Shown: positions 7,681 through 34,037 of the stretch, piece by piece
Numbering within the stretch: the first letter of the stretch is position 1
Layout: every line of letters begins with the position of its first letter
Assembly (NCBI GenBank): GCA_029953675.1
Contig: JAMWBK010000010.1
Span: forward strand, 558,001-622,000
Origin: Rhodosorus marinus CCMP1338
Lineage: Eukaryota; Plantae; Rhodophyta
Direction of reading: 5' to 3'
DNA: 64,000 nucleotides
Position numbers and translations under genes: made by a program
The notes under the pieces: model-generated
Told to the model about the DNA's origin: nothing
What the model saw: the letters and a program-made list of their open reading frames with translations, nothing else
Database searches by the model: none

Positions 7681-8276
7681 GGAGGGAGAGAGAGGAAGGA
7701 ATTTGTTCGAAGGTTTGAAGAGAAGGAGGGATAAAACATGAATAACAGGGTTGAATCAAAGTTTGCGAGAGATATGAGGTTGTTTAATGAAAGGAGGAGG
7801 GAGGGAGGAGGGGGTTTTAGTAGCGTTGGAGTGAGTTTGTGAGTGGGAAACCGGCGGTTTTGGGAGGGGCGGAGGGGGTTGGTAAGAAGGAATTGGAGGC
7901 GTGGCCATTTTGATATTGGCTGTGTTGAGTGCTTTGGAAGGGGAAAGGACGGCGGGTTTGGTTCTTCGGAACTATGAGCGGAGGCGGCCGCAGAGATGGG
8001 GAGTGGAACTCCGGGGACAAGGAAAGGTAAACGTCATGGGTTTTCTGGAAAGGGAATGACAGCGTGCAAGTCGTACTGCGTTTCCATTCTTCTCGCGTCT
8101 TGTTTCTTGCTTTATTGGGTTTGGATTTCCTGTTTATTTTTGGCTTTAGTGTGGAGCCTAGTCCCCTGTTTCGTCAACTCGAATGAACTGGGATTGAAAA
8201 ACTAACTCTTTGTTGTGTCGTATTCCCTGTGTGGAACTGCGATAGATTTGAACCCTACGACAGTAGAGGACAAAAA

Positions 8277-11200
8277 ATGCCTTACCTGGACAAGCAGTCC
8301 CCAGCACCGCCCAGGCGTTCCTTTAGCACAGCCAGCGGGTACGTAGTCGAGGTTAGCGACGGGCATCGACTGCTACATAGGGACTCGAGGGGATTTGGAG
8401 GTGGAGTGAATTCTATGAGGAGACAAGATTATGCAGAGAGTAGGGGCTCAAGTCCGACTCGAAGTCAGTCGCCTCATAGAGCAAGAGACGAGGCCCCTCG
8501 CTCAATTCGAAGAATATCTACCTCTGTGCCCGGAAGAGGGGGTTTCCGAATCGAGAATGAACCCATGAGAGAGTATGTGGAAGGTGCGCCCTATCGCAGG
8601 AGGCCTGGACCAGCTCGCGACGACTATCGTCCGCCGTACCAACGACACCATGATAGGACTATAAAAGATTCAAGGTTTATGTCTTATGACGAAGACGATT
8701 ATAGTAGAGGAGGCTTTCGCGGGGGTAGAGACATGCTGGGGAGGAGACTGTACAATTCTAACGAGGATGACAAGCGAAATAGGTACGTTCTTCGATTGCT
8801 TCGTGCGGACGCAAGATCAAGAAAGCGCACGTGGACTTTCAAACTGACAACCCATTCATGCTCGTCTCGTAGAGCTCCTGATAGAAGGCTGAACGGCCTA
8901 GATGACTCTGGCCATGGTTCTTCATACTATTCAAAGCGCAACTGGGACACTTCCCCGCAAATCAAAGTCGAAGGAAACAGACCTGGAGAACAGAAGAAGG
9001 TCATAATTACCACTCAGAAAGGAAGCGTGCAAATAGATGTGGGCAACGGCTCGACTATGATATCAAAAAGGCCCGAGTTGGATCCGCACAAAGCGGTGCG
9101 GAGTACCCCTGGAATTGGATTCAAAAGAATATCAGACAGACTTGGTGGAGAGCTGAAGGCAGTTGGTCGTGATGGGGAGCCTACAAACAAATTCAACGCG
9201 AGTTCGCATAGTACACCCGTAATCGGCAAGGACTCTACGGAGTTCAGACCGAACGCGAGTTCGGGGTCCAAGTTTTCCGCTCCCAATAGTCAGGAAGTCC
9301 CTGTTCGGAAACAGCCGAGAACTGAAATAGACCTCGCCCACGTTGTGCACCCGAAGAGAACTGAACCGACGTCGGCGAATGTCGACCATGCGGAGGCGGT
9401 GTTGGGTAGGAGCAGAAGCGATGTTGTCGTTGCGTCCTCCTCACTGTCTACAGGCAGCGCCGCGCCGGGGAGGGTAGCTGTTGAGTCGTCGTCATCAAGG
9501 AAGGTCGTTGCGCGTGATTCTGCGAGTACGTACAGATCACACTGTTTTCGCGCTTCCCAAGATCCCCTTTGTCGGTCTAACCGGACTGTAATTCTTGCCC
9601 ATCAAGGTCCGAACTTACCAAGCTCGAAAACAAGGGATTCAGGGGATGGTACGGCGATTCCCGAAAAGTCATCATCTGACTACACGCCGATTTCGAAAGA
9701 TGTGAAAGAGTTGGACCATGGTTCAACGTCGAAAGTTGGCAAACCACTTCAACCCTCAGTGTCATCAAAGGAAAAGGTGCCTATCGACGCAATGGATGTT
9801 GGACAAGCAGAGGACGTTGCACAAAAGGTCGTCGCTGACCAAGGGTCACTTGTAGAGTCGAAATTGAAAGACCCGAAATTCCTGATTAGAACGGATCGCC
9901 TTCAGGAGACTCAAAACGAACGAGGAAGTACCGCGATGGAAAACAAGACGGCACCTTCAGAAGCGAGCTCCGAGGACGATGACATGGACATGTCGCCGGA
10001 AGAACCTGAAGCTGATCACGTCCAGGGTGAGGGGTCAGCTGCGGAAGTGGATCCAATTGTTGAACGAGGGCCGCAGGCGGAGCTGTCAGCCTCCATCACG
10101 GAAGCGGTTGCGAATTACAATTCACGGCCCCAGCCTGATCACACTATGACCTTGGAAGCTGTTCCGAAAGAGAATGCAAAGGAAATGCAGAGCTCGCCTT
10201 GTGCACAGAATGTATTTAAGGTCGGAGCAGTCCCCGGAACTTCTACCCCTATAAAACCAGATGCTCCTGAGCCCAGGTTGGAATCTGTAGAAAGACGGGG
10301 GGCTGCTCCAGCACGGCAGGACGAAGATGTCGGGTTGAGAAAAGGGTACCTATTCTTAGAAGAGGAGGTAGAGCTCACCAAGGGTGACCTAGCCTCTGCA
10401 AGACAGGTCGACAGCGAAAGAATGGAAGGCATACGAGAGGCTAGGCCCTCTTCGGGGAGGGACGCTGCAGGAGACAGACAACCAAGCGAGCCCGCTGAAA
10501 AAGACGCTTCACTGGTACTCACTGAAAAAAGGTGGATCAACGAAGGCACAAGCGCACGGAAGAACCTTTCAGCCCGAGCTCCACTTGCATCCCCTGTGGC
10601 AGTGAGTCGCTGGGGCCGTTCCTCCGTGCTAGCCAGTGAAGAAAACCATCGAAATAGGGGGAAAACCCATGAGCTAGAGATCGAGAGCGATGCTCCTGAC
10701 AAGAACGGACATGTCATGCACGAAGATCAACAATCAGTCGTAGAAGCCGGAGCCCAAAACAAGGGGAGTACCAGGCCGAGCACGCGGAAGTCCGCGGTCT
10801 ACTCAGGAGCGAATGAGTCTGACCGTGAGGGGAAGAAGCCCCAAAAGGCTGAGCAGGTGGACATCGAAGTCAATAACACTGACTCCGAGTCTATCGCCCT
10901 CCCCACTAAACGCTCAAAACCCGATGAAGATTCTTCTGGGAAGCAACAGAAGGAAGCTAAACGGTCCCGGTCCGTCGCGGATGCTGCGCTTGCCGAAATA
11001 TCCTGGGGTGACCTCGCGAGCTCTTCGAAGGTTGAAGTGAAAGTTGGATTAGCGAAGCCGGACTTGGCGTCCAAAACTCAAGAGGTTCGATCACATCCGT
11101 TCCGAGATCCGGGCGCGATTCCAGCCAGCGAGGAACGAGGTGCCGTAAGGAACAACGCGACTCCTAACCTGTTTTCGAAGAACATTCGGCAAATGTCGGT

Positions 11201-12729
11201 TACTGAGGAGGGTGGCAGTTTGCCAGATCGCCAGTCGAAAGATGACGTTCTCGCCGAGATCAACAGGGTGGAAAAGAAGCTTTCGGCAATAAGAAAGAGC
11301 ATCACGAGCCTTAAACAGGATGTACCTCAGCGGAAGGTGGAGTCCAAGGTTGAGAGTACGCCTCCTCAGGATACCCGTGATACGCAGGTCTTAGTTTCTG
11401 AAGGGAAGGTTCCAGCGGAGACTCTAGCAGCTAGCGGTGTAGTTGAAGCTGCAGAGGCAAAGGACGTGGAAGGAAGGGAAAAGCTGCAGACGGATCTTGA
11501 GAAACGGCCTTCGTCCACAGAGCGAGTGACGGCTTCTAAGGAGGAGTTTCCCAAGGTTCAAAAGGCAGTAAAGCGCAAGTTGAGCAGGCTAGAGGAGATG
11601 ACAAGAGCGATAACTCAAGACGGGCAAAGTCTGGCTGAGTCTGCTCAGAATTCTCTCAATCGCATCTGCGGCAAGGGACAGCTCGTGGCGGATAGCTGGA
11701 TCTCGTTGAAAGAACCTGGAGAGCTTGAAGACGTGCGAAAAGTTGCCCACGATGCACTCCACAGACCCCAAAAGCTCAGAGAGGGTATTATAGCGGAGAA
11801 AAAGCATCGTCGAGAAAGGACTAAGAGGCTTCACGCGAAGTACAGGATGCTTGAGAAACAGTGGAAATCTGATCTGCGAAATATGAGGGACAAGCGAAGC
11901 AGGGACAAACGCGAAATAAGCAGAGATCGAGACAGGTATTTGATGATGGCGATCCGTGGTACGGACATGATACCGACGTCGAGAACTGGCAGTGGTAGAG
12001 TCACCTACAAACCCAGCGGTGAAGGTGGTGCGCCGGGAGCGCCGAGCTCTCTGCAACAAGTGGACGTGATGCTTACTCAGGTGGAGTCAGCGGGGGGTAC
12101 TCCTGGAGGTAGGGATCGCTGGAAGAGGACGCTAGCAACGGTCCCCGACCAGGACCCTGATCATCGACCATTCGAAGGTGGATCGGTTCTCATTGAGGAT
12201 CCGCTCGCGGAGTTTTACGGACGTCGTGTGGAGAACCCGTGGACCAGAGAGGAGCGCATATGCTTTCTGAAGAACTATTTGGAGTACAACAAGGACTTCC
12301 GGTGAGTTTGCGAACAATGACATGCTTTCTTGTAACAGTGAAGAAGTCTTTTCCTATCCTCAAGTCACCGAATTTTTTTTCGTGCGACGAATGGTGCAGG
12401 AAAATCGCCCAGTTCCTGGAGAATAAGTGCACGGAGGACGTAGTTCGCTTCTACTTTCAGAACAAGCTATGCCTAAACCTGAAGCAGCTCACAAAGGAGA
12501 ACATGAGGAGGCGTGGAAACGGCAGCAGGAAGACACCTCGGCTAACTCGATTTGGACCGGAGATCGCTCGAGGAGAACCAAGGTAAGAGGGACCTCCCCC
12601 CCCCCCCCAAAAAAAACAAACTTGTCGCTTTGGTTTCAGGATTTGCACTTATACGCGAAGCTCTTTACCATTGTACACAGCTTAATCAAGAACGAAGATG
12701 ATGCTGACGAAGCGGATGACGAGGAGTGA
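8277..12729 (+). CDS. N-CoR/Snt1-like SANT-domain protein with a long disordered N-terminal region
   Basis: 1358-aa ORF (ATG 8277). Intron GT12302..AG12399 joins NPWTREERICFLKNYLEYNKDFR to KIAQFLENKCTEDVVRFYFQNKLCLNLKQL, a SANT domain of the N-CoR/Snt1 type. A last intron, about 12583-12680, gives an acidic end at 12729. Confidence 0.8.
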
Positions 12730-16279: not shown

Positions 16280-17934
16280 CTTTCAACTTACCGGATAGAC
16301 AGAATCGTTGTATTTAAGTGATTTCGTTCGCGGAACTGTTGTACAAGATGTATACATCTATGAATTGTAGAAAAGAGAGTGTGTAAAACCTCATTAATCA
16401 TAGGGAGCGGTCTTGAACATACCATGAAGCCACCTCCTCAACCGAAACCATCCAGGAAACCAGCAACTTCGAAAACCAGCACCTTCTCTCAAGACATAAC
16501 CCCGTCGTCCAAACCGACAGCAATCTAGGTAAACCAGAAAAGAAAAAGCCGGTTTGCCCAAATCCATCTATTTTATTCAACTAAAAACACATTTTTTCCC
16601 GATTAAACCAATTACAATTCCAACAACAAACCTCTAAAACCCAATCAACGCCATCTAATACCACACCCATTAAAAACTTAAATGTTTTCAAGAATATGAA
16701 TGCACCAAAATGAAAAAAAAACACCACCCCAACAAAAAAAACCAAAAAAAATCTCACCCGACAAAAAAAACTGAATTCAATATCCAAACCTCACATTGTC
16801 ATGAAAACAAAATTAAATTAGACGGAAACCCTCCCCCTTTGAATCACCTGTTCGACCGGTAAAGGAGTTTGTCAGTTACCTAGAAAAAAAATAATAACTT
16901 GATTTTCTCGCCGTTTAGTAAGTTCAAAATTTAAAAAAATGACTCACAAAGACAGCTGTCCCTAAAACAGAAAAAGAGGAGTACTCTTTTAGTGGTTGTT
17001 TTTTGTACGGGTTTGTTCTGAAACATGCGTTACAGGGGTTCTGATGCTGGGAACTGTTGTTTTGATTAATCTGTGGTGTTTTTGTTTTTTTCAGCTGCGG
17101 AAAGGGTGTGTGCTGGGACTATAGTGTAGGGTGTTGGGGTTGGTAGTTGCAGGAATCTTTTTCGTTTTACTGGAGTCTAGCAGCCTATACAGTGCTGGTA
17201 GAAGGTAAAAAGCGACGAAAAACCAGACAAAAATACATACAGAGCCACTTGAAAGGGGTCAAGACGTCAGTGGTGGAAACTCTCTGGAGTGGACGTTGTG
17301 CTTGTGTAGTGGAGCTGCTCTTATGGCTGGGTGCTTACTGATGTTTTAATCGGCCAGGAGGATTGGAGAAAGTGTACAGGGTTCTGATTTGTTTCGTTTA
17401 TCTTTGTTGGGGAGAGCAGACTAGTGTTTGGCTCTGCCCGAAGGGTATTGGTTGTGCTGTTGTTGGTTTTGAAAGTTGTTGGTGAAGACCCACGCTCGTT
17501 TTCTCGTCGGAGAGGGTCTTGTCCATTTGGCCATAATTTTTGGTTTTCAGCCTTGCCAGCCGCGTTGTTTGTGGAATCCTCTCTCGTGGTTTGATTTTCT
17601 CCGCTCTGCTTGGAACGGTATTGGTGATGATTGAGTGAAGCGGGACTGCTTGCACAGAGAACAGCAACGACAGGCTTTGCTCTTTGCGGGTTTAAGGGGA
17701 TGTTTGAGGTAAGAAGCTACTATTTGATGTTGTTGGATGAGATGTCGCAAGGGTTGAAGTGAGCAAAATCGGCAGCTCTAGTCCCAGTGCGAGTTTTGCT
17801 TGTGCGGTTGTTCGATAAGATTTGTGGCAAGATTAAGGATTTCTGTCTGTGGGGAGCGGGGAGGGACTGCTAGTATTTCGATTGTTTGGACCGAGCAGGA
17901 CTTGCACTGTGTGCGAGTAGCGGAGGTTTGCTCC

Positions 17935-20900
17935 ATGTCCCTCGCACTAGAGAAAGAGCCGAGCTTCACGGACTCGAGCTTCGCTGTGTCTGAAACCGAC
18001 GAGGAGAGTGACGGAACGGAAACTTTCTCGTTAATCCATAATGATGTTTCACTGGCTATTGATCAGCTTAGAAGTCAGCTGCAAGTCCTTCAGCAGGCTG
18101 ACGGATCGGAGCTTGAGGTAATCAGATCAAATCACACTACTCCAAAATAGCAATTTCGGCGCTTTAGAGTCATCTGTCGGAAGCATGCGATTGCTGAGCG
18201 AGTGCACTTCATTCAATTTCAACGACTTTCAGGCCGAGCTTGGAGAGGCTAAAATATGCGCCGACGAAGCTAAAGAGGCATATGACGTCATGAAGAACAC
18301 CGTGCGTGAGATGGGACCCGATGCCAGGGCTAGATGGCTGCCACATGCGAAGATTCAGCAGGAGACACTAAAGGGTTTGATGTCAGAATACTTGAGTACT
18401 AAGCGTCAAGTAGCTCGCTCCGCTGTCTCAGCTGACCGGCGCAACACTGAGCAAGCCGATTCTGAGGAAGACGAAGAACCCGAGACTCCGGCAGTGGACC
18501 CAGTTACAGCGGAGAAAATTAGCGAATACCTTGACCAGTTGGACAGGGCGATGGACGAGATAGACAATAGCATAGGACGGAAAGAAATCGATAATACAAC
18601 GAGAAACCAAGTCAAGACAGCACAGGAAACCTATGACGGGCTAAAGGTACGCTGAGTGTGCTTGAGTATATTCCAGTCTCATGTTACTGTTTTGGAACTA
18701 CAAGTACTAGAAATGACTCTCCTCTGGCTTGCCAGGACCTCGTTCGAAGCATACCACCATTGGCCAGAGCAGAATACGTCGCAATCGCAAAAACAGCTCG
18801 TGATAGGCTACACAAGACGCTGCTGGAGCTCAAGGAAGTGCACATTGTTCCTGAAATCGTGCCAAGCACCCCTGAAAAGTCTCAGAAAGCGAAAGAGGAC
18901 AGCCAACGAAAACCAGACCAGAAACGTCTGGAGCGACTCCATAACGATCTCGCAGCCCTCCTCGTCAAACTCAGACATGAAATAGACGCGGTAAGCTCGC
19001 AAAACAAAAAAAAAAAGCCGTCCGAGAACCTCGGGAGATCCCCGGTCCAAACTCTCACTCGGATCAGCGCAGCTCTGAGGACTGTTTGGAGTCTCTCATG
19101 GGAGCGAGTCTGAGGGTGATCGGAGCGAGAGCTTCGAATAGCTGCTGAGCGTATCCACCTGAGAATGCAAGAAGCCTCCCGCCACAAAACCTGATATCTA
19201 CATGAAGACTGACTACCACTTGGAACTCTGCTTTCTTACGGAGCAGAAGAACTACTATGGAGCCAACTTGATCAGTCCCGAGGCGACGAGAGTGTACGAG
19301 GAGTTGAAGGTTAGTATTCGCTTCTAGAAAGGCTGTCCTTGAACAGCTGCAGTGCCTAATCGATCGAGATCCGGAGTCCAAATCTTCGTTGTAGAAGAAT
19401 GGGATAGTGCTCTGAATCAAAGTTGGGATTGTCACTGACAGGATGAGATCAGGCAGCACGGACCTGACGTAAAGAACGTGTGGCTGCCTGAGATTCTGTC
19501 GCAGAAGAACGACCTTCAAGCCTTCGTTCGAGTGTGCGAGGAGGCGGAAGAGAGCGAATTTGGAGTTTCTTTTGGTGATGCTGAAGCTGCGATTGACGAT
19601 GTGAATGACGTACCATATCCACGAGAAGCGACACCAAAGGTTCTCCAGAGAACCGCTGAGGAATCCCAAATGACAGATGACGTCTTGATGGAGAGCATTT
19701 GCATCTCAATTGACAGTCAGGTTGATAGCTTGACAAGTACGAACCATTACCCAATCCTCGCACAGGTCATCCGAGCGCTAATCAAGCGTATGGATATATT
19801 GTATCTTCGCCCTAGTTGCTCTCGACGCCTGCGAGGCTCGAGGTGGGTTGACCCAGCCTGACTACGACGGCCTGAAGAGTCAGGTCGCCGCTTTGAAGGA
19901 GACCTACGAGAAAGCCAAGGTGGGTTGGAACTATGGCCTAATCCGAAGAACTCTATTTCCGAAATGCTGAATACTTCGGACGCTGTTCGTTGAACACTTG
20001 TTCAGAACGAAGTACGGGCGATGCAGTCCGAAGGGAGGGAGAACTGGATTTCGGTGCTGAAGTCGCTCCAAAAGGATCTGCATGAGGTTTTGGTGAGGCA
20101 CGCAGAGTTGATGAGAGCGCTGACAAAGAATGGAGAGACGTTCCTGGCGGTGGATGAGGGTCACCCTCAGGAGCTTCAGACGGGTGAGTTGGAAAAGAAC
20201 CTCAAATTTTTCTTCCAGTGGTGTGATTCTCGAGTTTTCGACTCAGGAGAGGTAACTGAATTTTGGCTTCTCGACCGCGCTTCTTGCCAGAACAACTCTC
20301 AGAGGTATCAGATCACACTCCAAAGCATGAGAAAACTGATGAAGACCCCGCGGGGCTGCAAGTTAGGCACTCGGAGATTGGACCTTCGGCAGAGTTTGAC
20401 ACGCCAATGGTACGAAAAGTCTCAGAACAACCTCATACGACGGGGGTTTTCCATGATACTGAGTATGCAAGCCTTTCTGGGGGGGGTGGCAACCAGGCAT
20501 CGCTCGAGGATCTTCCAGAGCTTGAAGAGACAAGCTCGCATGCACAGCCGAAGGCTGATGAACATGAGCAGAGAACGTTGAGCATTACCGCTGCGAGTGT
20601 AGTCGAAGTTGAGACCAAACTGGAAGCAACTGTCTACGCGATGGAGGAGGACAGCGAGAAGGCAGCTCTGGACTTCACAATCGATCTCTATAGAAGTGCA
20701 ATGGCTGGTTTAAGGAACAGTAGGGGCATCCTCGACGAGTACAAGGTATGAAACGACCCAACTCGCTTATTTTGTTTCATTTGAAAAGGTTTTTATTGCG
20801 TTAGATAGTGCCTGGCTTCCTGCACTTAGAAATTGCTCCTCGCTGTCGTGCAGGCCTTCGAGAGTTCACTGGTTGAAGAAGACATGGACGTCCACAAGAC

Positions 20901-21132
20901 AAAGGTTGTCGAATTTGATGGAAGGATTGTCGCGGTGATGAAATCTCTTGTAGAGTTGGAAAACATGGCAGAGGCTGACAACCGCGTGCTAAGCAGTGTA
21001 CTGGAGGAGAAGTCTGTTAATAGCTCTGTTGTAACTTCCACCCCCACAGCTGCTGCTCCCTCTATCCCGCATGTGAAAAACATCGACAAGAAGAAAAAGA
21101 AAAAGCGAAAAGGCTGCTGTGTCATTTCTTAG
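17935..21132 (+). CDS. Multi-exon helical-repeat protein (at least 4 Vti1 N-terminal-like repeats) with a C-terminal polybasic CaaX motif
   Basis: Phase-0 introns 18118-18232, 18647-18735 and 19310-19441 join in-frame exons. The recurring motif is Y(D/E)x(M/L/A)KxxVRxxxPxxRxxW. The terminal exon ends KKKKKKRKGCCVIS*. Junctions between 18991-19246 and 19720-20290 are uncertain. Confidence 0.7.
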
Positions 21133-21708: not shown

Positions 21709-22725
21709 TCACTCTTTTTTCGAACTTTCTTTCTCTTCGCCTGGGTTGATAAGATCCTCAGAGCTGTTCAGTTGGTAGGTCGATTTGCCATCAAGCGGTT
21801 TGGTAAACTCATACTGTGCAGGCGAAAGCAAGTACTGGTGGAGTCTAACAGTTATGATAACGTCCCTACGCCGCCTTGTCAAAAATCCACGGGGGAAGAA
21901 GTACGCGTCGCCCCTGATCGTAAACAGTTTGTTGGCCTTCGGAATAATGGTAGCTTTCGGTGGCCCGCCTAGATCGTTGACATGTCGCTTGTAGTCGTAA
22001 AGTCCGATAGGCCCCCCCCAGAACTCTTTCGGGGCATGCGAAAACAGAAGGTCAGTCTGATGCGCAACAACAGCGGGTTTTGTCAAGAAAAGCGCGTCCT
22101 TGAATGTCCGACGCTCTATGTTGGAAAAGGTCGCCACAAAAGGTGGCAAACCTTGCAGCTTGGGTGGATTTTCTCCAATTTCGAACCAGTCCCTCTGGGT
22201 CAACTCTTGAGCACTTCGGACGTTGATAACAATTTGAAAGGCGTTATACTTTGGGGATCTGACCCGCTCGAAGAACGAAGTGAAGCAGCTTAAGCTCTCA
22301 TTCTTATACAACTCTGCGGCTCCCTTCGAAGTGAACTTGATAAAAACAGAATTGGAGTGGTTCTTCCTCCTCTCGGGGGCTAAGCCATTGACTGCCAAAT
22401 CCACAGCGCAATTCTCCAACTCTCTCAGACCCCTTGAATCCGCTGCTGAGAAGAAGTTCTCCGTCTCAACGAGCATCTCCTGCTCGCCCAATTGTGGGAC
22501 TATATGCCTCTCCTCGACGTCTCCAAGCAAGTACCTTACAAGCACTGCTATGATCATGCCGAGCAAGAAGATTCTTCCGCCCAGCTGAACCAACATCTTC
22601 CTTGTCTGAGCAATCTCGTCATCGACCGATGTCCCACGGCCCCTCGAAGCAGGGACTTCATTCTTTGTTTTCGCCCCGTTCTTCTTATGATCTCCTGTCT
22701 TCCTCTTTCGAGTTTCACCGGCCAT
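21709..22725 (-). CDS. Single-pass membrane protein with a 2OG-Fe(II) oxygenase-like domain, probably catalytically inactive
   Basis: Intronless ORF (ATG 22725) with a TM segment GRIFLLGMIIAVLVRYLL. NAF, FWGGPIGL, IIPKANKLFTIRGDAYF and RLHQYLLS match the double-stranded beta-helix pattern, but HxD..H is not visible. Confidence 0.6.
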   Translation of the reverse strand: MAGETRKRKTGDHKKNGAKTKNEVPASRGRGTSVDDEIAQTRKMLVQLGGRIFLLGMIIAVLVRYLLGDVEERHIVPQLGEQEMLVETENFFSAADSRGLRELENCAVDLAVNGLAPERRKNHSNSVFIKFTSKGAAELYKNESLSCFTSFFERVRSPKYNAFQIVINVRSAQELTQRDWFEIGENPPKLQGLPPFVATFSNIERRTFKDALFLTKPAVVAHQTDLLFSHAPKEFWGGPIGLYDYKRHVNDLGGPPKATIIPKANKLFTIRGDAYFFPRGFLTRRRRDVIITVRLHQYLLSPAQYEFTKPLDGKSTYQLNSSEDLINPGEEKESSKKE

Positions 22726-25700
22726 CTTTCTTTCTTTGTCTAAGAGCAAACAAGCCTTGCCAAAATGAAACACCAGATCTTGAACCACCTAGAGACAGTC
22801 TCTCCACCCCGCTCTCAAACACTAAATACAAAATACCTTAACGGATTCTGGTCGTGCTTTGCATCGATTCCTGGAAGGGCAGTTTCAACGGATTGAACCC
22901 CGGAAGGTGGTGGTAGGAGTTGAGAATCGGGTCTTCTTCTCTTTCATGATGGGTCAGGTCTTCTTATTCGCGAGGTTACGTTGGCCATCGGTCAGCGTCC
23001 ACAAAATCTTAAAAGAGATCCAAGCCGAGGGACACGGGAAAGGCGGCGAACAAACAGTTGTCCCGGACATTCGACTGGTCGGGCGTCGCCCGCGAGGGGC
23101 TAGGAGATGGTTCCCCTCACCCTCCCAAACCACCAGCAAACCTTGTTTTTGTAAGCTCAATGAGCCCTGAATACAACGTGAAAAGCAAAAACTCAACCTG
23201 ATGAAGAGCACTGGCTGCAAGAGATTCAGACAGTCCATTTGGACAGACAACCACGGCGGTCAAAAGAGCGAAAAAAAAGGGGAACTAGTACGTTGTACAG
23301 TTTAATATTGTTATACTATCAATATTAAACTGATTGCATATCAGTCAATATAGAACCACCGCCAATTAGGTCCCTCACCCACACTCACACGCGCATTTTT
23401 CTTCTAATAATAGATAATTCTTTTCCACTGGAAGGATTGTTGGAATCTGATTCGTCGGCGCAGATACATGGATTCTTGAGGGGTTAAAAAAACTTTCGCA
23501 AAGCTCCAGAATGCTCTATAGTCTTTAAAATAACTGAGTTTCACAATTTTCAGAAAGAACAGGTAGGTGTGTACCAAAACAATTTCTTTTGTTTTAAAGG
23601 AAGACAGTTTCTTTTTTTGTTTATATATTTTAAGCATAGCTGAGGTACGGCCCCTTTTTTGCCTTTTGGGGTAGGGGTTTTACCCTCATTGCGAGCTCGA
23701 ATACTTAACACTCCATATACACCCCCTTCTTGGTTTCCCATTTGTCACGACAATACCTCCAAAAAAATTATATAAAGCTTATAACGACGACTGTCGCTCA
23801 CGCCTTTTGGGAAAATCCGTTTCAATTCCCACTCCTAAATAGAAAAAGAACACCCCCCCCTAATATCGGAATGAAGATTTCATGCTTTTGAAGAAGCGAA
23901 AAAAAAAAATTCGCTCCTTTTTATTTTGCTAATAATATCAGAGGTAAGTAAAACATTTCCATTTCATTTGTTTCAAAATAGTACCCTTCCCGACGTAACC
24001 CCCCCTTTTCATGAAACTAAAATTTCCAAAGTGTGCTTTATCTATGAATATTGTTCGGCTCTGTTGGATCACCATGATTGATTGTAGGGGAGGGAGTGAA
24101 CAGCAACTTTTAGTGAGATACATCTTGGTGATATGTTTAGCCTGTCTTATGGGACGCGAATGAAAGGGTATAAAAGTGAGTGGGAGAGGAGGTGGGAGGT
24201 TGGCGGGATAGTTGGTGGCCTGGGTGGGGCTTTGCTTTTCTGGGAATTTGACTGGGTTGACAAGGTGGTTACGAACGGGGAGGGGGGGGGAGGGGGTAGT
24301 TTAGGCGCGACCCTGCTTTCTCTGCCCTTTTGGGGGTTATGGTGAGCTTTTGATGGAGTGACTGAGGGTTTATGAGCTTTTGACCATTTTGGTTCGGATG
24401 AGGTGGAACTAGTGGAGCCCTGACCACTATGGCCAAAAAAAAAAGGAGGGCGCTTACCATGGCGAGAGAGTTGCGCATGGTGGGTGATGACGTAATGGTA
24501 ACCCCCGATTTTTTCGATCCCGAGTACCAATGTGAATGAGGTAGGAGACCTGGCATTCACGGATGGCGAGACAGCTGGCAGACTGATGACCACGAGACGT
24601 GCAGGATATATTAGACACGAGATGTGCTGGATTTATATGGCGCGAGATTTGCAGGAAACATGACACAAGATGGCGATGAGACCGACACCGTTTTAGCATA
24701 GCCTCAATAGCCGAATGATCATAGCAAGATGAAACCTGTAGGACCTTTGTCGTAGGGGAACCAGCCCCATGTTTTTAACTACCGTATCCAGTTTCTTTCT
24801 GTAAAAGCAATGCCCCACGCTTTTCTTATATTTTTTCAGAAGACATGCGTGATGCGAACAGAGTTTCGACGCCGCGGTCGCGTAATAGGATTCAGGGTTC
24901 GTCTCGTACTCAAGGTACCAGTCCTCTTTGTAACAAATGGAGCTCTTATGCGGGCAGAGTTACCCCTTTCTGTCCTCCACTCCAACGCTAATATGTAGGG
25001 ACATTTTGTTATCGTCCCCTGTCGCCCATTTAACGCAGGACTGATGATGATGATGATGATGAGCTCTTGCCGGAGTACGCTTGGATCGGCTTCCTTACCG
25101 AGCGACACTGCGCGAGAGATGTGGCTCGCCTCGCAGGATAGGTATTTCAGAGAAAGTCTGTAAACCTGCAGCGAATGTGGAACGAAGTCTACAGAAAACA
25201 ACTCTGGCAACGAAGTGTACAGAAAAAGGGTTAGGGCAACCCCTCCGGTCAGAGCCCTGATCGAATGGTACGGCGAGCAGTTCGCGGTGATCAAGGAGGC
25301 ACAGCGGGTGGGCCTGGGAGATGACGAGAAAGTCCGAATCCTCAAGTCTGGTATCAACGGTAGGGGGAGCTCAAAGTTCACCTCTACACGACTCTGAGAT
25401 TGCTCAGCTCCAGACCTGAGGTGCAGGCATCCTGACATCTCATCATAGTTCACTTTTGTCACTAATGGCATCATTGTTCCAAACAGCCGCGTACGCGAGC
25501 GAGAGCCAGGAGGAGATTTCTACGAGAATTGGGGAACACAGACAATCCGTCGTGTAAATTGAGCAGCGCCACCTGCCCGAGAAACATACCGAAGGCTACC
25601 TGACGCACAGATTGCGTGTATGAAGTAATTTAAAGCCAGCCACTTTCAGGGTTTACTTGCTATGTACAGATATACTACTTCACCCCTGACCCAAGCACTC

Positions 25701-25814: not shown

Positions 25815-28800
25815 TCAAAATTGGAGATGGCTCTTGATGACACGGTTCGCGTTCGCCCGTGAACCCACATCCGAGTACAGCCTGACGAGATTATACGCCG
25901 CATCCCTCGATATGTCCTTCTTCGCTCCCCGCATATCTATGGCCAGCACCTGCTCGTACAATGGAGCAGCGACGTGTACCAAATTGCAGAAATGATAAAA
26001 ACGAGCGCAATTGTACAAGACCTCTGCCTTCACTTCAGGACAGCCATTTTCTCGGAGGTGACGATATTCTTGCAGAAAAGTTAGACCCTTTAGAACACAT
26101 TCTCCCCTGTTACGAATTCGCCTGGCTTGGCCCATATGAAGGTACACTAAGGCTAGCAGTAGACTTATCATCGCCTCATTTGGTCGTATTGTGTAGGCCT
26201 GAAGGTATATGGCCTCTGCACATCTAAAAAACGACGGCAGCGAGTCAGGACTATGTTGATCATGGCTTTTAAGAAACTGTCCCTACCTATAGCTCCCACT
26301 TTCGTAGAATCCATTGCCGACGCTTAAAAGACATGGAAGAACTCCCGGATTCTTCGCGCACAGGCGATTGGTGAACTTGAAAGTTGCCTTCGCCAGATTT
26401 CGCCTCTTACCGTTCTTGTGAAGGCCGACAAGAGCTGAGAGGACATACCAGTAAGTGGCCTGATCCGGTTTCTCTGTACACAGGCCCCTTAATTCTAAAC
26501 AAATTGATACCCAATTAAGCCCGCAATAGACCTCGCAATACTGTTTGTCACCCGGCTGCAATCTTACCATCATACGCGTGCATCAACTGGCGACCTCTTA
26601 TCGACGCAGCAACCCCCAGAAGCCGTAAACGTTCAATTAGGCTGACATCTGTTACTTCCTTAAGGTAGACGAGGCGGCTGATGATCAACGCAGCCTGCTC
26701 CTCCCGGTCAATGTCGCACATTGCTCTCCAAAACTTTTCCAGCAGATCCAAGTACTGTTCATCTGTGAGAACCTTGCGAACTGCAATACCGACATCCCTC
26801 ATTGAGAATCCATATTTTTCTTTTCCAGATTTTTTGGCCCTCCGACGGCCTGTAGAAAACTGGAAGAGCCACCCGCCTCCTCCGCCTTCGCTGGGCTCTT
26901 CGCCGTTGCTATCCCGCTCAATGCCGTGAAGAAGTTCTCCCGAGTTCGTTTTCGAGGCGTCTGCTGCGTTCCTTCGAGGTAGGTTACACGCTGCGTCCAT
27001 CAACGGCAGTAGAGTCTCAACATACCTGTGAGGATCCTCTTGTTCGTACCGCTCAGCGAAGCCGAGAATTCGCAGCACCGTTTCCTCTGCGGCCGCAACA
27101 GCGTGTGCTTTTTCCCTCATTGATCCTTCTATTTTCTTCAGGATACCCGTGATCTTTGTCTCCTCGCCTATTTTGGGATACAGCTCCACAAGTTGCATGG
27201 ACGCCTGGGTGAGGAAACATCATGAAATCTTGAGCTCTTGGTTTATCCGTGTCTGATCTCTTCCAGATTGATCTCCATGAACCCACCTCTACCATTCCGT
27301 GAGAGAGTTCCACGGCTTTCTCGAGGTCTAATTTCGCCTTGTCCAGTTGACCAAGCTCCTTGTACGCAGTACCTCTTCTCAACAAGAGGCCAGTGTTGGA
27401 GTGCTCAAAAGCTTCCAGTTCGTTGAAAACCGAGATGGAGAGCTCAAAATGCTTCTCATCCAGCAACGCCTCGCCCAAGTCCCAGAAGAGGGACTTGTAC
27501 TTTGAGTACTGAGATCCTAGCAATCCCAATGCCTGCCTGTAAACCGCAAAATTAGAGGAGTGGCTTCTGTTTGTTAGGGAGTGGTAGTCGTAATCTCCTT
27601 CATTAGAAAGGACCTAAGCTGGTTTCTTGAGCAAGAGGCTCACTCGAGTTCTTCGCTCGGTTTGTTCGACCCGAGTCGAATATTGCATATGGCTTGGCGT
27701 ACACGGAGATCAACAGGAAACTTCTCAGCGTGCCCTGCAGTGACCAGGCAGTAGCGAGTCAGGAGTGCGCCAGCGTCCACATATTTTCGAAGTACGAAGA
27801 GTCCCTCAACCATTTTGTTCATCATTCTGGGGTCTACTTTTTCTAGATCACCTTCACCCAACACCTTCTCCACTGTAGCGTAAAGGACATTTACAGACTT
27901 TTCTGGTAGGGCGATGCTTTCGTACAAATCTGCAATTCGGAACACTATATCATGTCGCTCCGGAGTTCTCCTCAACAGTCGCTCGAAGGTCTCTGCTGCT
28001 TGGCGAATATCACGCCTTTCTTCTCTGAGTTCGGCCAGGCGTTCCAAACTCGCCAAATCCTTTCCTTTCGAGTACTTAACGGCCATGGAGAAGCAGAAAA
28101 TTGCCTGATCGTTATTCCCAAGGGACATGCTGTAGAGCGCGTTCTTCCTCCACAGGGCAGCATCGCTTCTCTCGAGAAGCGCGGCGATCATGTAGTAGTC
28201 CAGGGCTCGGCGTCGGTCGTTGAGCTCCTCGTGGATCAGCCCCAATGTATGGTAAGGAGGGATGGCCTTGGGTGCATCCTTTGCAATTCGTCGGAGAATT
28301 TTCAGGGCATCATCAAATTCCCTCCTCATGTACAGCGTGTTCGCTTCGCCCATGAGGCCCTCCAAATGCTTCGGTAAACCGGAGCTCTTCCTCCGTCGCC
28401 TTCCTGTGCGTTTTGCGCGTTTTCCTTTGCGCTGATCTTCTTCAAGAATTCTATCTACAGCGGCGGACGAGATGCGATCCTCGCCAGCTTTTCGCTTGCG
28501 CTTTCTTGATCGCATGAACTCCAGCTCCAGCTCGTACATGTCCTCTTCCTCCTCGTCATATGCCTCCGTATCCTCATCCTCTGCTTGCTGGTCTCCGCCA
28601 TCAGCTTCGTCTACAGGAGTTTGCTCATCACTGCCGTCGTCCTCCTCATCATCATCCTCATCGTCGTCTTCCTCAGAAAGCTGATCATCTCCGGTGTCAA
28701 AATTCTCCAGTTCTTCGACATCATGCTCATCGAAACGAAAAGTGGAGTCATCGTCTTCATCCTGACCCTCCTCCTCTTCTTCTGCATCTCTCCTTTGTGC

Positions 28801-28830
28801 CTCCTCCATTCCTCGCTTTGCGAGTCCCAT
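25815..28830 (-). CDS. GTF3C3: TFIIIC subunit 3 (TFIIIC102/Tfc4), multi-exon TPR protein
   Basis: Acidic N-terminus followed by LMGEANTLY...PPYHTLGLIHEE TPRs. C-terminal AEVLYNCARFYHFCNLVHVAAPLYEQVL...RDAAYNLVRLY is characteristic of Tfc4/GTF3C3. Confidence 0.9.
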
Positions 28831-29848
28831 CGTTTTCTGAAGAATATGCGTACGAGCTATGTACGCGAAATCCAAAGCATGGATCAAACCAGAACTGCAC
28901 AAGTCTCTAACTACTGACCTACAGACCTCTTCAAAAAGGGTTCTCTATCCCCGCCGAACCAGCAAAAACCCTTTACAATTTACAAGATCTCAAAAAAGTC
29001 CAAAAGGTCGGATCCCAACTCTCGCTTCAACTGATCGCAGCATACACTGTCATTCCAAACTCTCCTGAACTCGGCCTCTGGAGGTCGTCTCTGGAAAAAA
29101 TCTCAAGCTTCATCTTTAGCTACCGTGGCGCTAACCACATCACTAGCATCCAAACCTCGAGAAAGCCAAGACAACCAAAAAGCCTTTCATTCTCGAGTAC
29201 ACCTGCCTGCAGCTGTCAAAGCTTCATGGCAATTGTCGTTTAGTTACCCCATTTACAACTCAGCTCGACCTATTGAACCCAGCTGAAGTATCAGCTGCCA
29301 GGGTATCTCCCCTCACCTTGGCCAAGCGCATTTATCAACGCTTCATGTTATGCGTGGGAGATCACTGCTCGAAGTTTTCTCGTGTTTTCAGAGTCACCAG
29401 AGCTGGAACATTCGCCAGTCTATTTCCGCTTGGCTTGGCCAAGCTATTTCATCAGCGCTTCAAGCGTTCCCTGGACTCCTCGCCTTTTGGCCTTCTGAGG
29501 CAGGTTAGGAATGGAGGAAGTCCTTTTGGTCAGTAGCTCAACTTGCAATCTTTATCGGGCATTTCACGGTTCCTCTAGTCCTTTGGGCTGCTGCATAAAC
29601 AGATATTCTTTCAGCTCTCCATTCAAGAAAGCGGTCGTTACGTCCGCGTAGGAAGACAGGACGTGCTGAAACCCAAGTTCAAGATCAGGAGATTCGTTTT
29701 TTTACGGGTAACAACCGCGAGAAGGGAGAACTACATTCTCTCCGAGTCAAACCTCTCGCACTATCCTATGCACTGAATGTGTAGATCCCAATCCCAGTTC
29801 GCCAGACCCAATATTTCAGTACTTATTTTAGTCAGTTAGTACAATAAC

Positions 29849-31840
29849 TTAGTAATGCCCTGATCTGAGATAGCTCGAAATGGCTTCGTCGGTGTCAGCT
29901 TGTTCAAGAGGTAGCTGCTCGTTCCGGAGGAGGTTGAAAATGCTTGCTGGTATCTCTGGGTCTGCAGCTTCGTGAACGCTCAGTCCATCTATTGATCTAA
30001 AGAGTTCATCAACAACGGTAAGGGCTTTTGGGTCTGGGGCGGTTACGGACAGCCTAGAAAACCTGTCTTGCGTGTTGTCCTCGATCTGCAAGTGAAGCTC
30101 CTCCTGAAGCTTGAGTAGCTCAGATTTAACGGGCCCAATACATCCAATAGCATGGTACACTTTCGTTGTCGAGGGGTCTGCCGGCATTTTCTGTACTGAG
30201 TCAGTGGAGAGCGACACCCAACCCAGTTCATGCAACAACCTTGGCTCTGATCCGACAATCGCAGCGTACACGCGCATACCCGCGCACGATAGAACTGTCG
30301 TGCTCAACAGGGTGAACCCCTCCTCGTCAACAACTCTACTCAACCGAGTCTGGCTCGAGATCTGCTCCCCCAAGAGCACCAGTCGAAGTCCGCCGATCTT
30401 CCGGTTGGTGCGAACCTTCGCCCAAACGACATGCTGCATTTGAAACAGCGTCTTCCCCCAGCCGTGTACGTTGAAAAATACCTCTGGAACTTCTTCTTCC
30501 AGCTCGTGGTCTGATTGTGGTAATGACGACTTGGAGCCTGCTATACACTTGAGATCCTCCCATACGGGTAAAATCGTTGGCATCGATTGATGCCAACCAT
30601 CTTCCTTGAGTCTTGTCCTGGACAGCCGATTCAGGGTTCGAGCCACGCGATCTTGAACAAGTCTTTTCTTCTCTATAGAGTTGGCAATCTCCGAGAGGTT
30701 CTGAATGCCATTGCAAAGCCTCTTCGCCAGGTGAGATTCGATGAGCGAGAATTGGTTGTTTTCCGACTCCGGCTGATAGGACTGGAAAAGGTAGACAGGT
30801 GCGCCTGCATGAACCTCTAGAGAATTTTGAGACGTTTGCAGAGGAACAACCTTTTCCGAATCAAAGCTAAGCACCAGAAGGCAGCCAATAGTTTCGGGAA
30901 TGAACACCTGGTGTGGATCTCCTGCAGATGGACCGCAAATGTGTAGAATTGTGCTGCCCTTCGGACTCTGGGCGATCAAGTATTCGTCGAAGATCGTCAT
31001 GGCTATAGGACAATCTCCGATGGAAGTTACGACTGACCGCGGTGCACTCTTAGAGTAGAGAATGACTTCACCTCCAGCGAAGCAGACAGCAAGACTTCCG
31101 TCAGATAGAAACGCAGCGCACCTGGCAAGTTCGGCTGCGGGTTCGTTGAAATTCGAGACCAGTTCTTTGCTCCTACATTTTCCTGCTTCCCAGCTCTCAT
31201 CACCGAACTCCAATTGAACGATCTTGTCCTCTCCATCAACCTGCAATGTGGCAAGAGGGTTTTTTCCCCCATAGGAAAGCCAATAGTTAGGTTTTTTGAG
31301 TCTGTGGTTGACCTCTAGTACAAGACAGTTCACCTTCGACAGCAGGATATTCTGACCAAGTATCAAGAGTGGCTCGACATGCTCCTCTTCCCATGCATAG
31401 GCACCTTTACAAGTAGCAATCGCCGCTTTGCCATTGCAGATGGTCAGAACTCCTGCACCAGCGCAAGATCGATATGAAAAATCGGAGGATGTGACAATGT
31501 AACCAGGGCAGTCAAACAGCCAGGTCAACCGGAGTCCATCGAGAACGAAGAGCGCAAGAATATTCGAGCTCTTGACCAACACGGCGGTCTGAGGAACACT
31601 CCCGCCTTGCGTGTTTTCAACTACCTCGACACCCACGACCGACCATTCAACATCCAGTCGATCAGGACTTAGGCCAATCTCAATCCGCTCGACCTCGTTG
31701 CAATCGAAATCCAGCAGACGGGCTTCAAGACCTTGAGACAAGACCCCAGACGAAACCCGTAGAAGACCGAGCACTCTACCGCATCCGTCTGCGGCTAATC
31801 CAATACCCAATTCCGAATGCGAAGCTACCACTGCCGCCAT
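29849..31840 (-). CDS. FANCB-like protein (beta-rich N-terminus, coiled coil, beta-sandwich)
   Basis: Intronless ORF of about 663 aa. LAKRLCNGIQNLSEIANSIEKKRLVQDRVARTLNRL...MPTILPVW...VVWAKVRT..IGGLRLVLL resembles the FANCB coiled-coil and sandwich region as recalled; not verified. Confidence 0.5.
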   Translation of the reverse strand: MAAVVASHSELGIGLAADGCGRVLGLLRVSSGVLSQGLEARLLDFDCNEVERIEIGLSPDRLDVEWSVVGVEVVENTQGGSVPQTAVLVKSSNILALFVLDGLRLTWLFDCPGYIVTSSDFSYRSCAGAGVLTICNGKAAIATCKGAYAWEEEHVEPLLILGQNILLSKVNCLVLEVNHRLKKPNYWLSYGGKNPLATLQVDGEDKIVQLEFGDESWEAGKCRSKELVSNFNEPAAELARCAAFLSDGSLAVCFAGGEVILYSKSAPRSVVTSIGDCPIAMTIFDEYLIAQSPKGSTILHICGPSAGDPHQVFIPETIGCLLVLSFDSEKVVPLQTSQNSLEVHAGAPVYLFQSYQPESENNQFSLIESHLAKRLCNGIQNLSEIANSIEKKRLVQDRVARTLNRLSRTRLKEDGWHQSMPTILPVWEDLKCIAGSKSSLPQSDHELEEEVPEVFFNVHGWGKTLFQMQHVVWAKVRTNRKIGGLRLVLLGEQISSQTRLSRVVDEEGFTLLSTTVLSCAGMRVYAAIVGSEPRLLHELGWVSLSTDSVQKMPADPSTTKVYHAIGCIGPVKSELLKLQEELHLQIEDNTQDRFSRLSVTAPDPKALTVVDELFRSIDGLSVHEAADPEIPASIFNLLRNEQLPLEQADTDEAISSYLRSGHY

Positions 31841-34037
31841 CCTGGTCACTTCAAAGCCTCGTCATTGCAAGAGGATGAGCAATCAAGTCCTGAAAAGAAA
31901 GTTCCTTTCTTGAATTAGCATCATCTCAAGATCACACGGGATTCGGGCTGCCTCCGCGATCATACGACCCCGCAAGCTCAATCTATTCCTCTTCGCGGGT
32001 TGATGCGTGGATACCACATGAACACACGGTCGGAATCCTCGTTGATGATCTGTAGTTGGATCGCTAGCAGTGTCCGCGAGTTATCCAAGAGAGGAGTCTT
32101 GAGGACTTAGCACAACTTCACAGCGCAGTCAAAGGAGAAGTCGATGCGGAAGGACCACACAATCCGGGTTACGGGCTCCATTTTCAGATGCTATTCGATG
32201 AATTCTGACCTTCTGCGTGCAGCTGGTAGTGCTTCAAACTTGGTTCCTCCAAAACCATATGGTGAAGAGCACGAACTCCAGTAAAACTATGTAAAGGAGC
32301 CTTCAACTCACGAGTCTTTCCTGGAAGCGCAAAAAAATCCCCGTTCTTGATTGTCAGGGAGCCGGAACAAATTGCGATAAGCATCCTGCAATCGAGCTGT
32401 TACAACTGGCTCCAATATTTGCAAGCGGCTCAAGAACGCTCTACCAACGAGCGGGGCTCGTTACACTCAATCGGATATTCTACACACCACAGTTCCTGCC
32501 AAAGTGACCTGATCAGAAGAGCGTCATACGACTGGGTCCCAGCAAGGCCAAAGTACGTCTGACCAAATGCCAAGACCGGATAGCGATCCTATTTCACTCT
32601 GACCGATCTGAAAACCCAAAGTACTACGCAAGCCTATATTCTTCCAACGACCTGATTTAAGGGGCGCTGGCGACTCCAATTTGACCTGGTACCCTCTTGG
32701 TCAGATTGGCAGCAGAGGATATCGGATGTGCTCTTCAACCCGTAGCGACCCAGGGCCTATAGCTGCGTGACCAGGATATCAATCCTGGTCACGCAGCTGT
32801 CGTTGAATCTCTAGCGTTCAAACATTCCTTTCTAGTTGGACGCGCGTCATCACCGCGGCTTGTTTCTCGCCTCAGGGTAGGGGCTCCGGATGAACGGATG
32901 ATAATATCCGATGCGCACCCACGCGCACCTTCGTGCACTATCCCCAACTATCATTGCAAGAAGCCTTGCTCCATTCATAACTTTCTTTGATGTTTTTATA
33001 TGTGGGATTCCTCCTGGTCGAAGTGTTGACCCCTTGATTCCCATTTCAATGTGAGAGTCTTCGTATGTTGCCCAGAAATAGATACAGAATTCTGATCCCC
33101 AAAATCCTCTCAACAACTCTCCTGAAAACCCGTTTCCTGACAAGACGGGGGCAATAAAACACACTTCCCCCCCTCCTCTCTTCTCCATACCAGCAAACAA
33201 ATTGTTCTAATTTTATTTTATTTTATATTTTATGTCCGTTACTTATTGATGTTGTTTTTATCACCCCTACCCAAACAGCGATTGAGGTCACCAGTAAAAA
33301 GGTCGCTGACAACGAGAATGGTTTTACTTGTATAGCCGAATAAATTGAATAGGACGAAGTACACTAACTGGTCCAAAACAAATCTACGCCCTTACTACTG
33401 TATTCAAAGGTAAGAGCTTTGAGGTGTATTATCTATATCAAGGATTGCCATTTCAGCTTTTGCGTTGGGAGGGGTAGTTTCTAAGACGTCTTATTGTCAT
33501 TTTTTCAATGGCATGGAGAACATATCTCAAGTTGATGGTATTGCATTCAGTGATGGGCTTTTCTGCATGTCAAACGTAATAAAACCTAACAGTCCTCGTG
33601 TTTTCGTATATCTGTACGATGATGATGAGGTTCTGGCTGAAGGCTGGAGTTGTTGTAGGTGTAGAAGAAGATAGAAGGGATATGGGAAGGACAACAAAAA
33701 GATAAAAAGCATACTTAAGATTCTGTGGTTGAGGATCCGTGGTGTTTGACTGTTCTTGAGAATCACCAGAGGAATCAGAAGAGTTGATTGCTTGAAGCAA
33801 TGAGAGGATGTAACGTAAAAGATTACGCGTTTCGATAAGCAAAAGTCTCGTTGGTGATGGATGAGCTCGATCGCGTTGAATAAACCTTGTTGTAAAGTGT
33901 GAACGATATGCTAAGATTGTCGTGCTGCTCTGTTAGGAACATTCTCTTACCCAGGAAGGAGGACAGGTCTTTTTCAACTGAAATATGAGGTAGCTTTTGA
34001 GCAAGTATATGCCCCAGGGCTACTAACTCTGCTGTGA

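Follow-up and report, generated by a model that had tools for sequence, protein, structure and literature searches.

What kind of protein is encoded between positions 17935 and 21132 of the forward strand in a 64,000-nucleotide (nt) stretch of the Rhodosorus marinus CCMP1338 genome (contig JAMWBK010000010.1, positions 558,001 to 622,000; this whole stretch is referred to below as the window)? An earlier note on this DNA had read the locus as a tandem array of units resembling the N-terminal three-helix bundle, or Habc domain, of the Qb-SNARE Vti1, held on a membrane by a K-Ras-like polybasic CaaX tail. We found that the locus is a single nuclear gene of nine exons, and that its product has four repeated units which are very probably truly homologous to Vti1 Habc. 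Despite its Vti1-type Habc domains, the protein does not belong to the Qb-SNARE family: the SNARE motif and the transmembrane anchor that membership requires were both looked for and are absent.

The gene model was assembled by splicing the open reading frame (ORF) fragments by hand with GT..AG introns only, which gave eight introns of 79-256 nt each. The spliced coding sequence of 2,226 nt (741 codons plus stop) begins with an ATG at 17935, which is kept in all strains, and closes with a TAG at 21130-21132, so that its start and stop codons agree exactly with the boundaries given earlier. The peptides quoted in the earlier note were all found in the spliced product, namely LIHNDVSLAIDQLRSQL, EAYDVMKNTVREMGPDARARWLPH, ETYDGLK joined across an intron to DLVRSIPPLARAEY, RLHNDLAALLVKLRHEID, RVYEELK joined to DEIRQHGPDVKNVWLPE, ETYEKAK joined to NEVRAMQSEGRENWISVL, and the C-terminal KKKKKKRKGCCVIS directly before the stop, which in a longer view of the tail reads ...NIDKKKKKKRKGCCVIS and then TAG. 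The product has 741 amino acids (aa) and a net charge of -58, or 712 aa when an optional in-frame GT..AG intron of 87 nt in exon 8 (20410-20496), encoding the 29 aa VRKVSEQ...GGGGNQ, is spliced out.

The closest database match of the spliced product is the NCBI entry "hypothetical protein NDN08_003900 [Rhodosorus marinus]" (P0001). Other R. marinus strains are represented in MMETSP/EukProt by three transcript-derived proteins, P0002 (779 aa), P0003 (712 aa) and P0004 (519 aa), which are 79-85% identical to the window protein, with P0004 at 85%. All eight junctions of the model recur in both P0002 and P0003, whereas P0004 has the first six of them, as it keeps intron 7 (20184-20290) and therefore runs into an early stop at 519 aa. 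The 29-aa segment of the optional intron is absent from P0003 and P0001 and present in P0002. P0002 and P0003 are complete ORFs that run from MS.ELEK through the first repeat to ...KKKKNKRKGCCVVS, and fragments from a third strain (P0005 and P0007) end in ...KKKRKKQKGCCVIS (GCCVIS). Because the P0002 and P0003 transcript ORFs span everything from the first repeat to the CaaX box, the 5' repeats and the CaaX exon are parts of one expressed gene; a division of the two between different transcripts, named in the earlier note as the outcome that would count against it, is not what these colinear transcripts of other strains display. Two side observations concern the same transcripts. P0002 carries an extra duplicated segment of about 67 aa that resembles a transcript-assembly merge of both isoforms, and the P0004 product would comprise the four bundles without the C-terminal module or the lipid anchor; it could be a soluble isoform or merely unspliced RNA.

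The repeats themselves, R1 to R4, are 85-97 aa long, with pairwise identities of 21-38% and blastp alignments in register. When Smith-Waterman local scores were compared with 1000 shuffles, significant scores were obtained for five of the six pairs (R1-R3, z = 12.4; R2-R4, z = 11.6; R1-R2, z = 7.9; R1-R4, z = 6.8; R3-R4, z = 4.8), the sole weak pair being R2-R3 (z = 1.5), and on this basis the tandem array is real. Invariant columns comprise a Leu in helix a and a Y-x3-K-x3-R motif closing helix b, which is followed by a loop, mostly Pro-containing, and then by R/K-x2-W/Y/F in helix c. The Lys and Arg of the motif (K55 and R59 in unit numbering) are invariant in all Rhodosorus units and present in at least 90% of units once those of the Purpureofilum homologue described below are added. 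Heptad reasoning suggests that the Tyr is a core position and that K55 and R59 flank the core, outside the a/d positions; because they do so, the two residues are candidates for a conserved surface site. Between strains, the bundles are 84-94% identical in comparison with P0003, against 51-84% for the N-terminal segment and the linkers, and the N terminus is acidic, as are three of the four inter-unit linkers. No further units were found elsewhere in the window.

Intron placement carries a second record of the repetition. A phase-0 intron lies four residues past the invariant Tyr (directly after the Lys of Y-x-x-x-K) at the identical place in R2, R3 and R4, as had been noticed before, and R1 and R3 have in common a second phase-0 intron, 16 residues ahead of the same Tyr. 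With about 285 position/phase sites per unit, shared intron positions and phases of this kind are not expected by chance. No repeat was found within the gene at the DNA level, so the duplications are old, and the pattern indicates that the array arose via old internal duplications of an intron-containing unit.

In order to identify the unit, several sequence-based searches were compared. The Pfam family V-SNARE, PF05008 ("vesicle transport v-SNARE protein N-terminus"; 92 positions, curated cut-off 25.9 bits), ranks first among families for R1 (21.2 bits, E=3.9e-4, profile positions 3-82 of 92) and for R2 (17.6 bits, E=5.4e-3, positions 10-89 of 92), and it is the family matched by most unit sequences (6 of 12). 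Two members of the family exceed the cut-off, P0004 with 33.2 bits (E=7e-8, two stretches) and the Purpureofilum homologue P0006 with 31.8 bits (E=2e-7, three stretches), and the precomputed annotation of both proteins also lists PF05008. A profile hidden Markov model (HMM) of the Rhodosorus units, searched against PDB sequences, placed the N-terminal domain of mouse Vti1a (1vcs) first at 16.5 bits (E=0.07). Adding three Purpureofilum units raised Vti1a to 25.4 bits (E=1.2e-4), again the top PDB match, with the runner-up, GINS Psf1, about 100-fold worse; for scale, the genuine Habc domains of Vti1a and Vti1b match each other at about 25 bits. An hhalign comparison of the unit alignment with three solved Vti1 Habc sequences gave a probability of 83% (P=9e-6) over 47 columns. 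Weak matches to Sos7, AKNA, GINS Psf1 and SNAP-29 were treated as coiled-coil noise, as they fall below Vti1 at the family level, and a phmmer search of the whole protein against PDB sequences returned no match. Conserved hydrophobic core positions of yeast Vti1p are F12, M55 and W79 (PMC3680383). In the HMM alignment to Vti1a, in which helix a is unaligned, the M55-equivalent column holds M, L, L and A in R1 to R4, and the W79-equivalent column is hydrophobic.

Structure prediction points the same way. The AlphaFold2 model of R1 contains three helices (2-27, 32-60 and 63-94) with a mean predicted local distance difference test score (pLDDT) of 93.3 and a predicted template modelling score (pTM) of 0.82. 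Foldseek comparison of this model with the PDB put Vti1b (2qyw, template modelling (TM) score 0.77, root-mean-square deviation (rmsd) 1.9 A), yeast Vti1p (3onj, TM score 0.76) and Vti1a (1vcs, TM score 0.75) at or near the top of the ranking, with rmsd values of about 2 A, whereas syntaxin-1 Habc, syntaxin 6/10 and BAG domains had lower TM scores. Spectrin was not among the 50 Foldseek matches listed. The Foldseek check that the earlier note had proposed, run here on R1, has R1 matching Vti1 domains best with no spectrin listed, and Pfam, PDB profile search, hhalign and Foldseek all return Vti1 Habc as the best match. The second tier is formed by the domains at the N terminus of syntaxin 6/10 and Tlg1 (STX6_10_61_N), which have the same three-helix fold class (Foldseek TM scores 0.70-0.72; Pfam E=0.003 for P0006; Tlg1 at E=0.3 for the unit profile against the PDB) but belong to Qc-SNAREs and always score lower than Vti1. 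A full-length AlphaFold2 model, made for the orthologue P0003, has low overall scores (pLDDT 54.9, pTM 0.24) but displays four separate three-helix bundles, with block pLDDT values of 51-90, and the segments that connect them fall below a pLDDT of 50.

Compared with Vti1a, Vti1b and yeast Vti1p, the units have in common a three-helix bundle of about 90 aa and the signature ..[LM]K..VR..P...R..[WYF]....K.....L across helix b, loop and helix c. Unlike these proteins, the window protein has four copies instead of one, its units have their own invariant Y-x3-K-x3-R, and there is neither a Qb SNARE motif nor a transmembrane anchor. No Pfam family for the SNARE motif, a stretch of about 53 aa with a central Gln (V-SNARE_C and related families), was matched at E<=10 by the whole protein, its C-terminal 175 aa or the downstream ORFs. 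Nor was a transmembrane helix found in a Kyte-Doolittle scan, where the highest 19-residue mean is 1.12 and lies inside R4, and the C terminus is polar and basic. These two absences, already remarked upon in the earlier note, are borne out, and the whole protein also lacks a longin or synaptobrevin Pfam match.

In place of a transmembrane helix, the protein ends with a predicted lipidation signal. The tail consists of K728-K735, a Gly and then C737-C738-V-I-S, with a net charge of +8 over the last 20 aa, and CVIS directly before the TAG is a canonical CaaX box. A Cys-Cys-aliphatic-x-Ser ending is common to all homologues, in the Rhodosorus strains and in Purpureofilum alike. The specificity of prenyltransferases is such that a Ser at the X position predicts farnesylation, and a polybasic run together with a farnesyl group targets a protein to acidic inner-leaflet membranes. 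The K-Ras-like polybasic CaaX tail proposed earlier is present and conserved, and its lysines are K-Ras-like, but it is better described as a polybasic stretch plus CCaaX box. Like the K-Ras4B hypervariable region, it has a Lys/Arg run just upstream of a CaaX box with an X residue predictive of farnesylation; unlike K-Ras4B, it has an additional Cys beside the CaaX Cys. A C-terminal Cys-Cys-aliphatic-aliphatic-X is instead found in Ykt6 and yeast Ras2, from which the window protein differs in lacking a longin domain, a SNARE motif and a GTPase domain and in having the extra eight-residue polybasic stretch. Apart from the logic of the tail, no homology to Ykt6, Ras2 or K-Ras was detected. Of the two Ykt6 cysteines, the first carries a reversible palmitate and the second a farnesyl group, and this anchor replaces a transmembrane helix (PMC6464585). 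By analogy with Ykt6 and yeast Ras2, we infer that C738 is probably farnesylated and C737 available for reversible palmitoylation.

How might such a protein work? The farnesyl group on C738, an optional palmitate on C737 and the electrostatics of the lysines are predicted to keep the C terminus at an acidic membrane, on its cytosolic side; the plasma membrane is the likeliest candidate. Held there, the four bundles would reach out on flexible acidic linkers and could serve as a lipid-anchored multivalent docking platform, or as a competing decoy, for trafficking factors that bind Habc domains. The protein itself would be unable to join in membrane fusion, since without SNARE motif and transmembrane anchor it cannot be a fusion SNARE. 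The docking-platform reading is suggested because Habc domains in SNAREs are bound by sorting adaptors and tethers: the Vti1 Habc domain by the ENTH adaptors EpsinR and Ent3p, Tlg1/Stx6 by Vps51 of the GARP complex, Sec20/Use1 by the Dsl1 complex, and Caenorhabditis elegans VTI-1 by VPS-51 (PMC3680383). Taken as a whole, the statement that four Vti1-type bundles with this anatomy make up a lipid-anchored multivalent Habc docking platform is the account towards which we lean, with some reserve; the docking or decoy function on its own, which is drawn from analogy, is tentative and would be the less secure part.

The alternative that survives best, although we consider it rather improbable, is that the protein anchors a non-trafficking complex in the manner of R7BP and R9AP, the anchors of RGS complexes, in which case the bundles would hold a signalling or enzymatic partner and palmitoylation would control its location. 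R7BP follows the same logic in a non-fusion role: its helical N-terminal region bears a weak resemblance to SNAREs, and a coiled coil precedes the polybasic stretch and its palmitoylated double Cys (PMC2171691). The bundles, the distinct conserved helical module and the polybasic-CC tail of the window protein parallel this plan. However, R7BP has one bundle, is palmitoylated and not prenylated (CCLVSS) and occurs only in animals. None of the Pfam and PDB searches detected sequence similarity to R7BP or R9AP, the resemblance of the units is specifically to Vti1, and the presence of four copies favors multivalency over a 1:1 anchor.

Several results weigh against the reading as Vti1-type bundles on a polybasic lipid anchor. 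With 15.7 bits as a whole and 21.2 bits in R1, the window protein stays under the PF05008 cut-off, R3 and R4 alone have no PF05008 match and give weak, scattered Pfam matches instead, and the hhalign alignment covers only helix b, the loop and helix c. Foldseek E-values for the R1 model are all at least 0.02 (range 0.02-0.3, with 0.02-0.1 for the Vti1 structures), and a designed three-helix bundle, 7xad, reaches a similar TM score (0.75), this design being itself matched by the Vti1a sequence (E=6e-4). With regard to the remainder of the protein, neither the strong lysine run nor the C-terminal helical module is family-wide: the former is confined to Rhodosorus, with a weak counterpart in Purpureofilum, and the homologue in that genus does without the latter. 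Three-helix bundles are common, and the points on fold and profile scores would fit generic three-helix or coiled-coil bundles whose likeness to Vti1 is convergent and which serve as a flexible acidic linker or spacer of a membrane skeleton; spectrin and plakin do appear among the weak Foldseek matches of the full-length model. We regard this explanation as improbable. Methods that use sequence only independently rank Vti1 first, two family members lie above the Pfam cut-off, and the Vti1a score climbs with a broader profile. There is no spectrin Pfam match at E<=10 for the whole protein or the units, spectrin repeats are of about 106 aa on continuous helices whereas the bundles here are joined by disordered linkers, and Foldseek on the full-length model was set aside as uninformative, its matches being meaningless at an rmsd of about 20 A.

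A third alternative concerns the C-terminal helical module, which follows a disordered stretch of about 110 aa, is separated from the polybasic stretch by a spacer of about 35 aa and has a core, EFDGRIVAVMKSLVELE, that is invariant among strains. If this module still paired with SNARE helices, the protein would be a degenerate or inhibitory SNARE acting as a non-fusogenic competitor. The module sits where a SNARE motif would relative to the anchor, is strongly conserved among strains and is predicted by AlphaFold2 as two long helices, and Ykt6 demonstrates that a CCaaX anchor can stand in for a transmembrane helix in a SNARE. We nevertheless judge this to be very unlikely, as the module has no SNARE-family Pfam match at E<=10 and no PDB match, SNAREs included, its heptad run judged by eye has about 10 layers and not 16, the AlphaFold2 confidence is low, and the Purpureofilum homologue does without it. 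The same segment (aa 592-690) had been considered as a fifth repeat, "R5", on account of a phase-0 intron after ...EYK and its helicity. This candidate was rejected as a detectable unit: against R1 to R4 it gives z < 1 relative to shuffles and an hhalign probability of 1.6%, and neither a Pfam nor a PDB match was found.

Finally, a gene-model artefact, with repeats and CaaX exon in separate genes or the CaaX end spliced out, is extremely improbable, for although 21031-21132 is spliced out in P0001, which thereby lacks the polybasic-CaaX end and the stop and reads on into an 89-codon ORF (to 21408) without homologues or domains, the P0002 and P0003 transcript ORFs are colinear over the whole length between residue 1 and the CaaX box, P0005 and P0007 end in GCCVIS, and the Purpureofilum homologue ends in CCICS. 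The 3' end of P0001 is contradicted by the transcripts of other strains. P0001 also adds a 3-codon 5' mini-exon at 17700-17708 (region 17700-17898).

To determine how widely the family is distributed, a profile of the full-length orthologue alignment was searched exhaustively with HMMER against 1.84 billion representative proteins. Only three proteins matched: the Rhodosorus cluster itself, a C-terminal fragment from Rhodosorus, and P0006, a 407-aa protein (E=5.5e-7) of Purpureofilum apyrenoidigerum from the same class, Stylonematophyceae. A word-indexed search with P0006 returned only P0006 itself, and a unit-profile search returned only P0008, a Rhodosorus genomic ORF fragment, so that the family was detected only in Rhodosorus and Purpureofilum of the Stylonematophyceae. 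P0006 has three units and the C terminus ...KADKSKFSCCICS (CCICS). R4 is the nearest counterpart of its unit 1 (z = 17) and R2 that of its unit 3 (z = 11.6), both matches exceeding those between most Rhodosorus units, and this closeness implies that two or more unit types existed before the two genera split. The unit order differs between Rhodosorus and Purpureofilum, and the middle unit of P0006 has diverged strongly, with z < 3 in every comparison. The history of the array could have involved shuffling, loss of units or their independent duplication.

Table 1. Coordinates in the window of the exons, repeat units and C-terminal features of the gene.
Feature	Position	Strand	Residues and remarks
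Exon 1	17935-18117	+	aa 1-61; acidic N terminus, R1 helix a; junction between SELE and AELGE in P0002, P0003, P0004
Exon 2	18233-18646	+	aa 62-199; R1 helices b and c, acidic linker, R2 helices a and b; phase-0 intron after ...ETYDGLK
Exon 3	18736-18990	+	aa 200-284; R2 helix c, linker, R3 helix a
Exon 4	19247-19309	+	aa 285-305; R3 helix b; transcripts (EIDA, then KNYYG) fix the acceptor at 19246/19247
Exon 5	19442-19736	+	aa 306-403; R3 helix c, linker, R4 start; phase-1 intron at end
Exon 6	19816-19919	+	aa 404-438; R4 helices a and b; phase-0 intron after ...ETYEKAK
Exon 7	20006-20183	+	aa 439-497; R4 helix c, start of long disordered acidic linker
Exon 8	20291-20745	+	aa 498-649; disordered linker, first half of C-terminal helical module
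Exon 9	20854-21132	+	aa 650-741 and stop; second half of module, disordered spacer, polybasic stretch, CCaaX
Unit R1	18016-18415 (span including intron 1)	+	aa 28-122; PF05008 E=3.9e-4; three AlphaFold2 helices, pLDDT 93.3; Foldseek top Vti1b/Vti1a/Vti1p
Unit R2	18497-18867	+	aa 150-243; PF05008 E=5.4e-3; three helices in full-length AlphaFold2 model, pLDDT ~76-86
Unit R3	18922-19564	+	aa 262-346; z = 12.4 against R1; three AlphaFold2 helices, pLDDT 51-74
Unit R4	19676-20131	+	aa 384-480; z = 11.6 against R2; three AlphaFold2 helices; best match of Purpureofilum unit 1 (z = 17)
C-terminal helical module	20572-20976	+	aa 592-690; conserved among strains; helical, pLDDT 39-53
Polybasic stretch KKKKKKRK	21088-21111	+	aa 728-735; KKKKNKRK and KKKRKKQK in other strains; KADKSKFS in Purpureofilum
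CCaaX box CCVIS and TAG	21115-21132	+	aa 737-741; CCVVS, CCVIS, CCICS in homologues

Outside this gene, the window contains several other coding features. Two adjacent intronless ORFs at 53690-55282 (-) and 56124-57707 (-), of 530 and 527 aa, both code for a Kelch beta-propeller with a BTB/POZ domain after it and have the appearance of a tandem gene pair. The ORF at 51266-52411 (+) strongly matches the Orn/Lys/Arg decarboxylase major domain (PF01276, E=2e-61), a pyridoxal phosphate-dependent decarboxylase type best known from bacteria, and a 420-aa ORF at 27640-28902 (-) encodes a TPR-repeat protein. An uninterrupted ORF of 1358 aa at 8229-12305 (+), without a Pfam match, is located where the window is richest in purines (AT skew 0.26 and GC skew 0.13 at 10-12 kb). 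A 690-aa ORF at 46316-48388 (+), likewise without a Pfam match, contains a 36-nt tandem repeat at 48164-48275 (3.1 copies, 88% matches). The ORFs at 29849-31849 (-) and 21709-22788 (-) also gave no Pfam match.

The architecture of the protein is new and built from known modules, while the gene is annotated as hypothetical, and no description of tandem-Habc or prenylated Habc-only proteins was found in the literature. To our knowledge, Habc-type domains have otherwise been seen only in SNAREs, to which they are appended for regulation or sorting. A four-copy Habc-only protein on a lipid anchor would show that the Habc domain can act as an autonomous membrane-tethered interaction module, and it would provide a natural tool for learning what Vti1-type Habc domains bind apart from fusion. 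The reach of this finding is that of a family detectable in two genera of one small red-algal class. As the public annotation loses the lipid-anchor end of the last exon, surveys of prenylated proteins would miss the gene. Red algae have a reduced set of trafficking genes, and lineage-specific inventions such as this one may show how they compensate. We can further envisage, as a speculative and on present evidence unlikely extension, that the protein is the founding member of an unrecognized SNARE-derived class, in which the Vti1 Habc domain was freed from the SNARE motif, multiplied and placed on a switchable farnesyl/palmitoyl anchor, so that the protein, as a multivalent receptor or decoy, would set the site at which ENTH-type clathrin adaptors or tethering complexes are recruited. 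If true, this would amount to SNARE-independent regulation of vesicle sorting.

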